A DNA stretch of 64,000 nucleotides from Phaeosaccion multiseriatum. Its lineage: Eukaryota > Protista > Ochrophyta, other classes. Under the pieces are notes generated by a model that had not been told where the DNA came from, made no database searches, and saw only the letters and a list, made by a program, of their open reading frames with translations. The first letter of the stretch is position 1; every line of letters begins with the position of its first letter. This document shows, piece after piece, positions 18,415 to 23,888 of this stretch. Made by a program: the position numbers and the translations under genes. The stretch covers positions 3,100,001-3,164,000 of the forward strand of contig OZ218953.1 of NCBI GenBank assembly GCA_965112735.1, in the 5' to 3' direction.

Positions 18415-21267
18415 CTAAGCAACAAGCGCCCCCCTCGCGCCTCCTCTGCCTCTACTGTTGGTGCTACTACCGCTACCGACTGCTTTTTGAGCGCCCAGCC
18501 AAGAGTCAAAGCGCCTCCGCGACAATGCGCACACTGGCATGACGTGCTTGTCGAACTTGGGTCGAATGCCCATCTGTCGTAAGAGCGCCAGTCTGGGCCT
18601 CATGGTTTGCTCAATGCTCCGATCGGTGAGCAGAGGGAGGCGCATGCCAATCTTCCTGGGCGTTGTCCCTTCCATCTCCACTGACACGAGGTGAGCAATC
18701 GCCTGCTGCTTGTGCAGACTCACCGCCTTGAGCCGCCGGGCAGTGGGTGGATGCTGCAAGAGCTTCTGCCAACCCGCTTCCGACAGCCCCAGCTCGCTCC
18801 TGTACCACTCCCTCCTCTCCTGCAGTGGTGGCAGGATGCGCTTCTGCAACCAAGGAGGAAACACGTCGTTTGCCAGTACACAAACCGCCTTGGCATGGTC
18901 GTGGAAGGTGGGCGTTAACCCCGACGCCTTCATCTGCTCAATCCGCGGCCGATACGTGTTCTCTACGCTAAAGTTGACGGTGATGCGCGCCAGCAGCAAG
19001 CCCACTTCCCTTGGCGTGCTCCCCTCCATCTGCTCCAGCAGCAGCTCGGCCACCGCCTGCATCTTCTGCACGCGCACCCTTGCCAGCTTTTTGAGTTTGG
19101 GCGCGTCACTTATAATCTCGTTCCACTCATCATCGGAGAGCCCCAGCTCCTCCACAAACCACCGCCTCTTGTCCTCCAACGCGCGCTCGGGGGTGCTGTT
19201 GAGGTTCCTCAGCCACCGCTTGAATTGCGACGCGTTTTGCGTGCACACTGCCTTTGCATGGTCCTTAAACACCGGCGTAAAGCCCATGGCCTTCATCTGC
19301 TTGAGTCTTGCCTTGATCGTGCGCTCCACATTGTGGCCCAGCACGAGTCGAGGCAAGTCCAGTCCAATGTCCCTCCGCGTCACCCCCTCCATCTCCTCCA
19401 GCAGAACGTCGACAAACTCCTGCATCTTCCGCAGGGTCGTACCCTTGACCTTGACAGCAAGGCTCGGAACGTAAAAGAATGCTTCATACTCCTCCTCCGA
19501 CACCCCCAGCTCGTCCACAAACCACGCCCGCTTATACTCCATCAGCACATCTTTGGTGTAGATCTGCCCATGCAGCCACGACGCGAATTGCCGCTCGTTC
19601 AGAGCACACATGGAGCTGACATGGTACGCAAACACCGGCTCCACCCCCAACGCCCTCAGCCTCTCCAGTCGAGGCTTGACTGTCCGCTCGATGCTCGGGC
19701 TGGACAGCCGTGGCAGCCTGAGACCTACCGCGTGGGGCGTGGCCCCCTCCATCTCGCGCATCAGCGTCCGTGCCATTGCCTTCATCTTGACCAGGCTCGT
19801 CGTCTTCAATGACCTGGTGGTCACACGATGCTTGAAAAAGCCTTCCCATTCTTGCAGAGTCAGGCCAAGCTCATCCATGTACCACTTCCTCTTCTCCTCC
19901 ATGACCACGTGGGGCGAATGCTCCATCGCATTGTGAAGCATCCTCTTCTCAAGCCACTCGTCAAAGTTGTGCCTCGTGAGGCGGCAAACGGCCTTGGCGT
20001 GGTCGGCAAAGACGGGCACCACACCGTGCTCCCGCATGGCCGCGAGCCGAGGCTTGATGGTGTTGTCCACACTGTGCCGCACCAAAAAGGGCAGTGCCAT
20101 ACCCACTTCCCTCGGCGTGGCTCCCTCCATCCCCTCGAGCAGAGCCGCAGACAGTGCCCGCATCTGGCGAAGGCTCACCTTGTGCAGGTACTTGCTAGCC
20201 CGCCACACCAGCTCCTGCCAGTCCGGTCGCGAGAGCCCCATCTCCCCCATGAGCCACTCGCGCTTCTCCTCCTCCAGGACTGCCGGTGTCCGGAGCTGGA
20301 GCTGCAGCCACGTGTCGAAGCGCGCGTCTGAGTATGTGCACACCGGTCTGGCGTGCTTTTTGAACTGGGGCTGAATGCCGTGCCGGAGCAGCACCTGCAG
20401 CCGAGGTCTCAGGTTCCTGGGGTTCCTGCTCCGCCCAATGATGCGGGGAAGCAGCAGCCCGACATCTCTAGGAGTGGCTCCGTCCATCTCCAGCAGGAGC
20501 AGCCCTGCCAGCTCCTGGAACTTGGACAGGCTCACCGAGGACAGCATTCGCGCACTAACCGTGTGGCCGAAAAAGACTTGCCACTCAACCTCGGAAATAT
20601 CCAGCGCTTTGATGAACCACTCCTTCTTCTCCTTGAGCGAGAACTCCGTCGACACTTTGTCCACCCGCTGCCTCAACCAGGCATCAAAGGGAGCACTCGC
20701 CAGCTTGCACACGGCGTTGGCGTGCTCCTCAAAGCGAGGTGGGACGCCGGCGTCCCGCAACATTTGCAGCCGAGGCATGATACTATTTTCAATGCTCAAC
20801 GTCGACAAGCGCGGTAGCGCCAAGGCCACTTCTCTCTTCGTCGCTCCCTCCATCTCTGTAGTCAAGATCTTGGCCATGGCTTTCAACTTTACGAGGCTCA
20901 TTGTGGTGAGCCTCTTTCCCGTCGACCCGTCGTCGAGCAGGCCTTGCCACTCCTCCTCCGTTATCCCCATCCTATATACAAAGAACTGCCTCCGCTCCTC
21001 CATAGGGGCGTGGGAGTATCGCTTCCCCACCCTTGGCCGTGCCTTCATTGCCACTTCCACTTCTCCTCTGCGGCTGCCCGTCAGTCTCCTATTGCTACTT
21101 CTGCTACTGCTACTGCTACTGCCACTGCCGCTGCTGCGGCTAGTACTGTGGCCTCCTTGGATAAAGAGCGCGCTGCTGCAAAAGGCGCGCGTTTCCACCA
21201 TCAAATGCAACCCCACCACCCCAGCTCGTAACATGGTCCACCACGGCCGCCTCCTCCGCTTAGGCAT
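18415..21267 (-). CDS. Intronless helical repeat protein with seven ~120-aa mTERF-like repeats and a putative bipartite plastid presequence
   Basis: Single open frame (ORF 18415-21531; likely ATG 21267 or 21234). Repeats start at 21003, 20637, 20274, 19902, 19542, 19179 and 18825. Each has LPRL..S.E.T.KPRL, resembling the mTERF motif. The N-terminus MLRAGVVGLHLMVETRA-FC is followed by an S/R-rich stretch. Confidence 0.8.
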   Translation of the reverse strand: MPKRRRRPWWTMLRAGVVGLHLMVETRAFCSSALFIQGGHSTSRSSGSGSSSSSSRSSNRRLTGSRRGEVEVAMKARPRVGKRYSHAPMEERRQFFVYRMGITEEEWQGLLDDGSTGKRLTTMSLVKLKAMAKILTTEMEGATKREVALALPRLSTLSIENSIMPRLQMLRDAGVPPRFEEHANAVCKLASAPFDAWLRQRVDKVSTEFSLKEKKEWFIKALDISEVEWQVFFGHTVSARMLSSVSLSKFQELAGLLLLEMDGATPRDVGLLLPRIIGRSRNPRNLRPRLQVLLRHGIQPQFKKHARPVCTYSDARFDTWLQLQLRTPAVLEEEKREWLMGEMGLSRPDWQELVWRASKYLHKVSLRQMRALSAALLEGMEGATPREVGMALPFLVRHSVDNTIKPRLAAMREHGVVPVFADHAKAVCRLTRHNFDEWLEKRMLHNAMEHSPHVVMEEKRKWYMDELGLTLQEWEGFFKHRVTTRSLKTTSLVKMKAMARTLMREMEGATPHAVGLRLPRLSSPSIERTVKPRLERLRALGVEPVFAYHVSSMCALNERQFASWLHGQIYTKDVLMEYKRAWFVDELGVSEEEYEAFFYVPSLAVKVKGTTLRKMQEFVDVLLEEMEGVTRRDIGLDLPRLVLGHNVERTIKARLKQMKAMGFTPVFKDHAKAVCTQNASQFKRWLRNLNSTPERALEDKRRWFVEELGLSDDEWNEIISDAPKLKKLARVRVQKMQAVAELLLEQMEGSTPREVGLLLARITVNFSVENTYRPRIEQMKASGLTPTFHDHAKAVCVLANDVFPPWLQKRILPPLQERREWYRSELGLSEAGWQKLLQHPPTARRLKAVSLHKQQAIAHLVSVEMEGTTPRKIGMRLPLLTDRSIEQTMRPRLALLRQMGIRPKFDKHVMPVCALSRRRFDSWLGAQKAVGSGSSTNSRGRGGARGALVA

Positions 21268-22216
21268 GGTGCTACCGTCTCTCCTCCCTCCAAGAGAGAA
21301 GGAGGGCGTGGCCCTGGGCAAAACGGGGTCTCCTCTTCTTCCGTCGGTCCAGCTGCCACTGTTGGTTGGACATTGGTTCATGCGCTGCTGGGACACATTG
21401 TCCTCCTCCTCTTTCCTCTCCTCTCTTGTCAGGGCGCCCACTTTTGAGGGAAAATTCTCCAATCCCTCTATCGCTTGCCACAGACCTTCAGGAGGGTATC
21501 TTGGACGTCTCCTCCAACTCGGCGGCAGCACCGTTGGGGAGATATTGAGCTATAGAAAGCACACTTCAAGAAAATTGGAGAGGGTGGGTGGTGTTGCAAG
21601 ATATCGATCATCTCTATTTTATTTCGATCATCTCTAATTTTATGATCTATTTTATTTAGATCATCTCGACAGCTCGAGCAGCAGAGGCTGAGGGGCTGAG
21701 GGAGGAGCCTATGTCTTTGGTAGCAGCAACTGCCGCGGCTGCGGCTGCGAGTAGCGCCGAGGCATGCACCCTGTGGGAGCAAGCCCCCTCCCTCTCTACT
21801 CGACCGGCCATACTTCGCGCTAAATCACAGCGGAAGAGGGCCTGTAAGATGTGCGAGAAGTGTGGGCATTAGCAGGAGGCTCGGAGGGGTGGCGTGGGCG
21901 TGCACACAGGGAAGGAGAAGACTTGTTGCATACCGATTGACAAGCGGACCAGGAAGCGCAATCGCAATGGCGAGCTCATTCCAGAGACCCAGTCCGCCAG
22001 CAAGATGTATGGTGGGCCCTGTGAGTGTGTATTCTGCAGTTCATTCGCAGCTTCTAAGCCATAGAAAGGCCAATACAGGGCCAATAAAGGGGGCCAAAGT
22101 CTCTTCGCTTATTGTAATCCACTAGCCAGTCGCCAGTTGTGGTGGTGGAATTTGAATTTAATTGGCTGGCCCTTCCTTCCCCCTTTTCTCACGATATTCG
22201 CCTCTTTCCCCCATCC

Positions 22217-22675
22217 TCGACTCACCGATAACTATTACGGCACCACCTGATTACTGATTATGGCGCCAGCCGGGCCTGATTACTGATTATGGCCGGTGCC
22301 AGCCGGGCCTGGTTACTGATTATGACCGGCGCCAGCCGGCCTGAATACTAGTTTTTTTTCCAAGCCAGCCTGATTACTGATTATTGATTATTGGCTCCAG
22401 TCGGCCCCTGACATGCTTCTGAGACAGGCCAGCCCAGAAGCAGGAAGCAGGCCGGCTGGCGCCGGCCAGAAGCAGGAACCAGCCTTGGCCTTCATCATTG
22501 CCTTATTACATGGCTTTCCCTCAGAACCTGGAACTGATGGAACCTGCCTGCTTGGCCGGCTGGCGCCGGCCAGAATCAGGAAGCAGGGTCGCCTCAGAAG
22601 CATGTCAGGGGCCGAGGCCAGCCGGCCTAATTGCTGATTTTGGCCGGCGCACACTGTAACCTTGTCCAGGCTCGA
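22217..22675. mobile_element. Putative non-autonomous element with TCGA termini, 6-bp TSD CCATCC and an internal ~30-bp tandem array
   Basis: CCATCC|TCGA at 22211-22220 and TCGA|CCATCC at 22672-22681. Internal CCTGATTACTGATTATGG-CGCCAGCCGG repeats start at 22246, 22275, 22308, 22340 and 22369, with a degenerate copy after 22616. The inverted repeat beyond TCGA is weak. Confidence 0.55.
22401..22615. mobile_element. MITE, 215 bp, perfect 23-bp TIR, nested in the tandem array
   Basis: TCGGCCCCTGACATGCTTCTGAG (22401-22423) and its exact reverse complement (22593-22615). Flanks CTCCAG / GGCCAG are a possible degenerate 6-bp TSD. Confidence 0.75.
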
Positions 22676-23888
22676 CCATCCCTTTTCGATCTCCTCGGCA
22701 CATGTTCGAAGGAAAATCCTCGGCACATGTTTGGAGGAAAAGAAACAAAAGCCGGAGAGGTACACGAGCGGCTTTCTGGGGGGGGGGGTAGGGTAGATAG
22801 GGTAGGAATTGTCTAGAAGTTCCTTCCCCCCCCCCCAGACTGCTGACGACTGACGACTGACGACAAGAAGCTATTGGGCGATCACATCGCGCTGACCCCG
22901 GCATCAAGCCGGCCCGCTTCCCCAGCCTTTGCCGCAGAGCAGTGCTTTGCCTCTTCCCCCCTTTGAGACTCCACATTCTCCGGCACTACAGGCACAAGGC
23001 ATATGGGCAGGACAAGCAACGGCAGGCAGGCAGCAGGGTGCGGCAGCAGGGCCGGTGCCCAGCCGGCACCCTTTCAGCTGTTGATTTATGTGTGTGTGTG
23101 TGTGTGTATGGCCAAGAGCTAGCTCTCGACAAATATGCAATAGCGCGTCAGGGGTTCAATACGTAAGGTCAGTAGCTACGTCACGCCAACAAGTCTGGCT
23201 GGGCGCCAGCCAGAGGCGCGGCTTACCCTCTCCCTTTATTCTTCCTCATCTTCTGATGGGCTTTGTGAGTTCGGATTAAAGTTCGGGGGGGGCGGGGAGG
23301 TCGCGAAGAAGCTACTACGTTAAAAAGAAGGATGGCTGGGGAGATCGTGAAGAAGAAATGGCCCTCCATTGCAGCTCGTCGTCCGAATGAAGCACTGGAA
23401 TTCAAACTGCTAGACCCGAATAGTCAAATCAAGGTCAAATACAAACCATCTCGAGAGTCGCGCCCAGCGGCCTTCCTGAATAATTCGGGCTCCTCTAGGT
23501 ACGCCGCCCACGACATAAGCTGCCCGTTTCCACTGCGCCACCTACACGCACGCCCTCACCCTGCAACTAGCCGGACCTGTGTAGAAGAGCTGATTTGCAA
23601 TACACTGAGGTCTCGCGCTCCTTTATTATTAATACCTTGCAGTGGCGCTAGGCTTTTGAAAGACTTGAGATGATGGCGTTGCAAGAGAAACCGTAGGCGG
23701 GCTAGACTTTCTGCTGCTGGAGAGGGACAACCCAATGGATTGCATAGATATGTGCGAGGAGAAGTAGCAGCAGAAGAGCTACGCACCCTCACCCAGGCCC
23801 CTTCAGTCTCTTGGAGCATTCCGCGTTTTCTCTGACGCCACTTTATCTGTGGGCCAGCGCCAAGTGCGGGGAGAGCCAGAGAGACCTT

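Follow-up and report, generated by a model that had tools for sequence, protein, structure and literature searches.

The subject of this analysis is a minus-strand gene in a 64,000-nt stretch of the Phaeosaccion multiseriatum genome (OZ218953.1:3,100,001-3,164,000, assembly GCA_965112735.1), here called the window, in whose positions the coordinates are given unless another contig or locus is named. The gene encodes a probable presequence followed by seven tandem units of about 120 residues, each corresponding to the end piece of an mTERF domain. Its open reading frame (ORF) is uninterrupted and read without splicing, with the stop codon at 18415-18417 and a stop-to-stop open stretch of 1044 codons. 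At the local stop-codon frequency of 0.024, the probability of a 1038-codon frame staying open by chance is ~8e-12. The start of the probable coding sequence (CDS), MPKRRRRPWW, resembles that of one of the paralogues described below (MPRSRRVRPW in L017).

The locus was compared with four runs of genomic DNA from one sample. In three of them (X2, X3 and X4) a single contig of ~4.3-4.4 kb spans the region from 17380 to 21707-21723 with zero differences, and run X1 takes two overlapping contigs to cover it, likewise with zero differences; the sequence is therefore sound, and the gene is, to judge from its reading frame, intact. A contig joint from 19178 to 19631 was considered as a splice and rejected, its shorter side being only 25 letters long, and was taken as an assembly artefact across units. 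Long plus-strand ORFs overlap the gene in antisense and gave no match in a Pfam scan, an Rfam scan of 16-24 kb gave no match, and the locus appears to encode nothing besides the array gene. Just upstream of the gene, at 21730-22710, the summed contig depth of the DNA runs climbs from ~100 to up to 46,000, in the largest run to 262,000, and alternative joints and loose ends are numerous, which marks a very high-copy short repeat.

Seven tandem units behind a probable presequence

The units were delimited by anchoring on the motif xM[ED]G[ASTV]T, which gave anchor spacings of 122, 119, 126, 120, 121 and 118 residues and seven units of 118-127 residues each that fill residues 174-1026 of the ORF (18454-21012, minus strand; Table 1). 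A sequence-only reading of this DNA had described seven tandem units at 18490-21003, and both the number and, essentially, the span agree with ours; the consensus and the seven variable basic segments that it quoted are present exactly as given. It had also called EM[ED]G.T and H-x4-C essentially invariant. The core M[ED]G.T and the H-x4-C pair are indeed found in 7/7 units, whereas the leading Glu precedes the Met in only five, being replaced by Gly in one and by Gln in one. Thirteen residues in total never vary among the seven units (M54, G56, T58, L66, R81, G89, P92, F94, H97, C102, F109, W112 and L113). Pairwise identity between units is 33-46%, with the differences distributed along the whole unit length. 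A metal site at H-x4-C was judged unlikely, as conservation of the Cys is 76% across the family and the brown alga Choristocarpus (see below) lacks it. As H97, A98, V101, C102 and F94 share one face of helix 7, this face suggests core packing.

At the DNA level, Tandem Repeats Finder (TRF) identified no tandem repeat in the repeat-coding region, the repetition being at the protein level only, and the short simple repeats that it did report lie either beyond the ORF or in the part that encodes the presequence. Identity among units at codon positions 1, 2 and 3 is 0.53, 0.63 and 0.44, against 0.27, 0.26 and 0.36 expected from composition, and the GC content at third codon positions (GC3) of the gene is 0.78. 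The pattern of identity over codon positions, together with the lack of a DNA-level repeat, argues that the array is an old amplification under selection on the protein.

Table 1. Features of the array gene (window positions) and its paralogues (contig and megabase position); residues are counted from the GTG
Feature	Position	Strand	Remarks
ORF, 1038 codons from a GTG	18415..21531	-	DNA contigs of four runs match, 0 differences
Probable CDS from the ATG at residue 89, 950 residues	18418..21267	-	Start codon inferred
Signal-peptide-like N-terminus, residues 89-116	21184..21267	-	MPKRRRRPWWTMLRAGVVGLHLMVETRA; hydropathy peak 2.0
Phe117 at putative cleavage site	21181-21183	-	TRA/FCSS (slash, putative cleavage)
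Ser/Arg-rich transit-peptide-like stretch, residues 117-173	21013..21183	-	
Unit 1, residues 174-295	20647..21012	-	Variable segment DDGSTGKRLTTM at 20899-20934
Unit 2, residues 296-414	20290..20646	-	Variable segment 20533-20568
Unit 3, residues 415-540	19912..20289	-	Variable segment 20176-20205
Unit 4, residues 541-660	19552..19911	-	Variable segment 19798-19833; unit modelled alone
Unit 5, residues 661-781	19189..19551	-	Variable segment 19438-19473
Unit 6, residues 782-899	18835..19188	-	Variable segment 19075-19110
Unit 7, residues 900-1026	18454..18834	-	Variable segment 18721-18756
Short Gly/Arg-rich C-terminal tail	18418..18453	-	RGRGGARGALVA
This gene			7 units, each matching unit-profile positions 1-3 to 115-120 of 121 with 163-176 bits
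Paralogue	C12:2.12 Mb		8 units
Paralogues	C4:2.81 Mb, C2:2.97 Mb, C6:3.47 Mb		5 units each
Paralogue (L016)	C4:1.53 Mb		3+3 units in two overlapping frames, probably one gene
Paralogues	C4:3.26 Mb, C4:2.82 Mb		3 units each
Single-unit genes	C12:2.14 Mb (two), C4:2.99 Mb		

The presequence (residues 89-173) has no family match. It begins with basic residues, runs through a hydrophobic stretch to a small residue and Phe at the putative cleavage site, and then turns Ser/Arg-rich, a plan shared by 9 of the 10 readable N-termini of the family (e.g., EG/FSAHAP, RC/FTPAAP, QG/FGSG and LA/FQGG). This pattern fits the ASAFAP-type motif of the bipartite plastid presequences known from diatoms and from other algae whose secondary plastids are of the red lineage (PMC4329603), so that plastid targeting, as the earlier reading had it, is likely. 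The poly-Ser run within the presequence is encoded by a simple repeat at 21089-21148, of (CTGCTA)n type on the plus strand, where the depth of the DNA runs spikes ~16-fold because similar repeats occur elsewhere in the genome.

The unit and its relation to mTERF

Against the whole protein, the Pfam model PF02536 (mTERF) scores 57.4 bits (E 1.5e-15, cut-off 23.1), a sum over five stretches, all of which map to profile positions ~211-314 of 314; positions 1-210 are missing and no complete mTERF domain is present. A profile (A2) of 41 units, drawn from the array gene and its paralogues, was run against 1.84 billion representative proteins (representatives at 50% identity), which gave 248 matches at E <= 1e-3; 30 of these reached E <= 1e-10, and none reached 1e-30. 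Eight of the top matches were scanned with Pfam, and all eight are strong mTERF proteins (101-225 bits); those among them whose source is named belong to the brown algae Choristocarpus, Discosporangium and Ectocarpus or are annotated as 'mTERF domain-containing protein'. Among the best 150 of the 248 matches, many contain a single match to the full unit, located at the C-terminal end of the protein or close to it (e.g., 441-552 of 554, 371-482 of 484 and 420-530 of 538). These matches identify the unit as the terminal piece of ordinary mTERF domains.

It can be read as three motifs, EEKR.WF..ELGLS..EW..ll-[P]-variable helix-L...SL for the first, K.M.A.A..L..EMEGAT.REVGL.LPRL...S.E. for the second and T.KPRL..LR..GI.P.F..HA..VC......F..WL for the third with its cap, a reading that is plain in the better-preserved units of a Choristocarpus protein (P0001, described below). 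The sequence-only reading was thus correct in matching the C-terminal part of the unit to an mTERF motif, and its view of a multi-motif mTERF-derived module amplified as a block agrees with both the profile matches and the structure. What does not hold is that the module is new, since the unit is the usual terminal piece of a domain already known, and only the architecture is new. When the whole array was the query, a word-index homologue search over candidates of 0.55-1.75 times its length gave no match at E <= 1e-3. Searches of PDB sequences with the protein and with the 41-unit profile gave chance-level matches only, for example to eL21 and to designed helical proteins, with no mTERF chain among them.

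Unit 4 modelled alone with AlphaFold2 (AF2) and a 41-row alignment gave a very confident model of eight helices, with a predicted local distance difference test (pLDDT) of 97.0 and a predicted template modelling score (pTM) of 0.88. When this model was compared exhaustively, independently of Foldseek, with 48,161 solved chains, five mTERF structures came out on top. The unit superposes on the last three motifs and C-segment of MTERF1 and MTERF3 at 2.5-2.7 Å, and the matches include chains from Tetrahymena (6z1p_BY) and Polytomella (8a22_Xb) and human MTERF4-NSUN4. The model consists of stacked motifs of three short helices, as in the mTERF fold. In the prediction, each eight-helix copy of ~120 residues is shown as an autonomous folding module, and in sequence as well as in fold the protein is an mTERF, with an unusual layout of a known family.

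It could also be argued that the seven units form one continuous solenoid, with 21 motifs in a single mTERF superhelix that tracks at least 50 bp or nt, and with the period of ~120 residues being only a trace of how the gene grew. We regard this as unlikely. A model of three units reached a pTM of 0.50 against 0.88 for one and lies on MTERF1 at a root-mean-square deviation (rmsd) of 20-25 Å; moreover, every unit has kept the terminal cap (F..WL), and proteins with a single unit are encoded in the same genome.

Paralogues and the variable segment

A search of the 67-Mb genome with the unit profile gave 49 matches, which after re-scoring correspond to ~11 genes with ~45 units. Paralogues with differing repeat numbers, which the sequence-only reading had thought could be found through the repeat, therefore do exist and hold from one to eight units (Table 1). 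Like this gene, they are built of this unit (at 75-146 bits per unit), have a presequence of the same type and are mostly single open frames, but they differ from it in having 1, 3, 5, 6 or 8 units, in a unit identity of 28-48% to this gene and, in some cases (L018), in long acidic or low-complexity tails. By comparison, PF02536 finds only ~6 ordinary mTERF loci in the genome, so the end-piece arrays outnumber them. One of the ordinary loci has a canonical domain of 96 bits (L021, G000:C1:3309000-3316500) and consists of two adjacent canonical mTERF genes with ORFs of 911 and 984 residues, the second of which continues after the mTERF domain into a Lys/Ala-rich, histone-H1-like tail of ~320 residues.

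Contig C4 holds six family loci. Five of these, from a family of ~11 genes, fall in a 450-kb interval from 2.81 to 3.26 Mb (L013, L014, L020 and the window), two of them ~4 kb apart (L014, 2250-4907 and 6953-8482), and this cluster looks like local growth by segmental duplication. At C12:2.14 Mb, an ORF of 1041 residues (L018, 3030-6152, minus strand) carries a single unit at residues 285-405 amid long poly-Glu, poly-Gln and poly-Ser tracts; the surroundings of the module differ strongly from those in the array, and the ORF shows that a unit can occur alone. At C4:1.53 Mb, two overlapping frames of 749 and 475 residues (L016, 1383-4729, plus strand) meet at an LSLSLS stretch encoded by (CTCTCT)n, and the split could be an intron or a frameshift at the microsatellite.

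The tree of units is star-like with long branches, only 4 of its 41 inner branches being well supported, and the order of amplification is therefore not readable from it. Its only clear signal is the 1:1 pairing of the units of the C2 and C6 genes (L015, L019), which argues that the array in this pair predates the gene duplication. In addition, the three Choristocarpus units group together.

The most variable stretch of the unit is at positions 23-38. Lys and Arg reach 51-59% there at positions 33, 34 and 36. The variable segment within it carries indels and forms helix 3 of motif 1 in the model, a short one (residues 29-37). From this segment the sequence-only reading had inferred a PPR- or TALE-like array in which each unit may recognize its own subsite, a reading under which the order of the units would spell the target. 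The segment is indeed enriched in Lys and Arg and different in every unit, the repeat number does differ among paralogues, and the homologous piece of MTERF1 reads bases directly (PMC4705650); nonetheless, the units differ throughout their length and not at fixed code positions, the indels fall in the very segment that should carry the code, and a geometry of one repeat to one base is impossible for a unit of 120 residues. The near-uniform repeats, fixed specificity positions and one repeat per base of the PPR/TALE type are thus not found here. Moreover, in the 1:1 paired units of the duplicate genes the variable segment is 25% identical (15/59) against 50% for the rest (205/411), the corresponding values for unpaired units being 13% and 35%. 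With this difference in paired units, relaxed constraint and neutral drift appear to fit the divergence of the segment as well as diversifying selection would, and a programmable reader of this kind remains doubtful.

The same holds for the broader idea that these genes are the ochrophyte counterpart of the plant PPR and green-algal OPR expansions, a lineage-specific set of fast-diversifying factors for plastid gene expression whose autonomous modules would each recognize a short nucleic-acid subsite, with the order of modules setting the target, which we consider similarly doubtful. If it were true, the array would be a new and possibly re-programmable modular reader with a recognition unit much larger than that of PPR or TALE proteins.

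Proposed function and comparison with known systems

We propose that, after an organelle presequence that is most likely for the plastid, the mature protein would consist only of seven tandem three-motif end pieces, with consecutive copies joined through helices, and that this basic array (pI 9.87), working inside the plastid, would bind double-stranded or structured nucleic acid multivalently. Each module would grip a short stretch, much as MTERF1 does with the end piece that forms its 'C-site', and seven modules in series would provide a long footprint and avidity. Specificity, if any, would lie in residues that vary on the surface, among them those of the basic third helix of motif 1. Going by the known mTERFs, the likeliest roles would be in the handling of plastid transcripts or rRNA (termination, processing, splicing or ribosome assembly), and the ligand could be RNA or DNA. 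Among the known mTERFs, MTERF1 acts on double-stranded DNA, and MTERF4, the plant mTERF4 and mTERF9 and the mitoribosomal mTERFs act on rRNA or introns. To this reading, a plastid protein of seven autonomous mini-mTERF modules that would each grip duplex or structured nucleic acid, we assign a probability of about 0.6.

Binding of nucleic acid is argued indirectly, from the pI and from homology to the piece of MTERF1 that contains R350 and R387. These are two of the residues with which MTERF1 reads bases (R162, R202, R251, R350 and R387; PMC4705650), and both lie within residues 286-399, the part that matches the copied piece; in the units, position Arg81 is basic in 41/41 and Arg60 in 85%. 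Several observations weigh against the reading. As no solved mTERF chain is reached by the unit profile through sequence, the contact residues of MTERF1 are not mappable onto the unit columns. Single units score 15-17 bits or nothing against PF02536, which is below the cut-off, and the family membership therefore rests on the summed score together with the structure. The three-unit model was built on an alignment of only 11 rows, which may account for its low pTM in place of real flexibility between modules. The h-region of the signal peptide is only moderately hydrophobic and contains Arg and His, hence the protein might instead be targeted to the mitochondrion. Finally, a search for RNA runs containing the locus, which would speak for expression, found none.

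The structural matches 6z1p_BY, 8a22_Xb and MTERF4-NSUN4 are mTERFs built into mitoribosomes or their assembly intermediates, which would favour a protein scaffold or a structural component of an organelle ribosome, i.e., an architectural binder of proteins or rRNA rather than a sequence-specific regulator. For a fixed structural component, ~11 fast-diverging paralogues with differing unit numbers would be unexpected, and we find this explanation rather improbable. Least probable by far is a non-functional or unexpressed ORF, either a decaying copy of the family or a chance frame in GC-rich DNA: the lack of RNA runs and the long antisense ORFs would fit it, but the antisense ORFs have no family match, and the open frame of 1038 codons, the conservation of codon positions 1 and 2 well above position 3, the GC3 of 0.78 and the 13 invariant residues all contradict it.

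If the modules bind nucleic acid independently, as in the multivalent binder that we prefer, they would provide a compact (~120 residues), well-folding block for engineering. With regard to evolution, the family shows that a terminal piece of a solenoid domain can turn free-standing and then multiply, a route to new repeat proteins that is distinct from the amplification of a single motif. Land plants use PPR proteins and Chlamydomonas OPR proteins, and a search of the literature library available to us found no paper on factors governing the expression of plastid genes in ochrophytes (diatoms, brown algae and their relatives). Since the end-piece arrays outnumber the ordinary mTERF loci in this genome, they are plausible candidates for lineage-specific factors of this kind.

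For the comparison with other proteins, we define an end-piece-only array as at least two tandem, capped, full-profile units of ~115-125 residues without the canonical N-terminal part of mTERF; this gene has seven full-profile units and the other members have 3-8. Outside this genome, repetition of the end piece only was identified in a single case among the best 150 of the 248 profile matches, Choristocarpus tenellus CAM9431374.1 (P0001), and such arrays are thereby shown to be rare elsewhere, as far as protein sequences tell; the search covered lineages with gene calls, where multi-unit arrays would score near the top. P0001 is an unnamed brown-alga protein of 538 residues with three full units (153-262, 284-395 and 418-527) and one partial. 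It shares the hallmarks ...EDMGA..., ...LRPR... and ...G..P.F.DH...F.RW with the present array, but has 3-4 units against seven, in its motif 1 a normal mTERF motif is still readable, and position 102 has not kept the Cys. Since its units score 32-41 bits against the profile of this genome and cluster together, they point to a separate amplification or to homogenisation. A few metagenome or transcriptome proteins of ~1,100 residues with two full-unit matches were rejected, as their Pfam scores of 224 bits correspond to repeated whole mTERF domains. A further match, from Ectocarpus sp. 13 (P0163, CAM9284515.1, 1058 residues), has one full unit (518-631) followed by a methyltransferase-like region and is probably a fusion of mTERF-RlmI type.

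Canonical mTERF proteins (human MTERF1-4, plant mTERF1-35 and MOC1 of Chlamydomonas) have one domain of about eight motifs. The array resembles them in the Pro-capped motif of three short helices, the fold, the nuclear gene, the putative organelle presequence and the basic character; it differs in its high sequence divergence and in that canonical members have profile positions 1-210, whereas here only the end piece (~211-314) is present, seven times. With the PPR, OPR, HPR and TALE proteins it has in common a lineage-specific expansion of nuclear helical-repeat genes with variable repeat number, and PPR, OPR and HPR proteins are organelle-targeted, as is proposed here. The nearest published tandem layout is that of pTERF, prokaryotic proteins of 3-11 tandem mTERF-like repeats for which DNA binding was shown experimentally (PMC11417379). 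In both, mTERF-like helical units stand strictly in tandem, but pTERF repeats a single three-helix motif in prokaryotes, whereas the present protein repeats a capped block of three different motifs in a eukaryote. Arrays of mTERF end pieces were not found described in our literature search; the family and the fold are already known, and what is new is the layout of tandem, capped end pieces.

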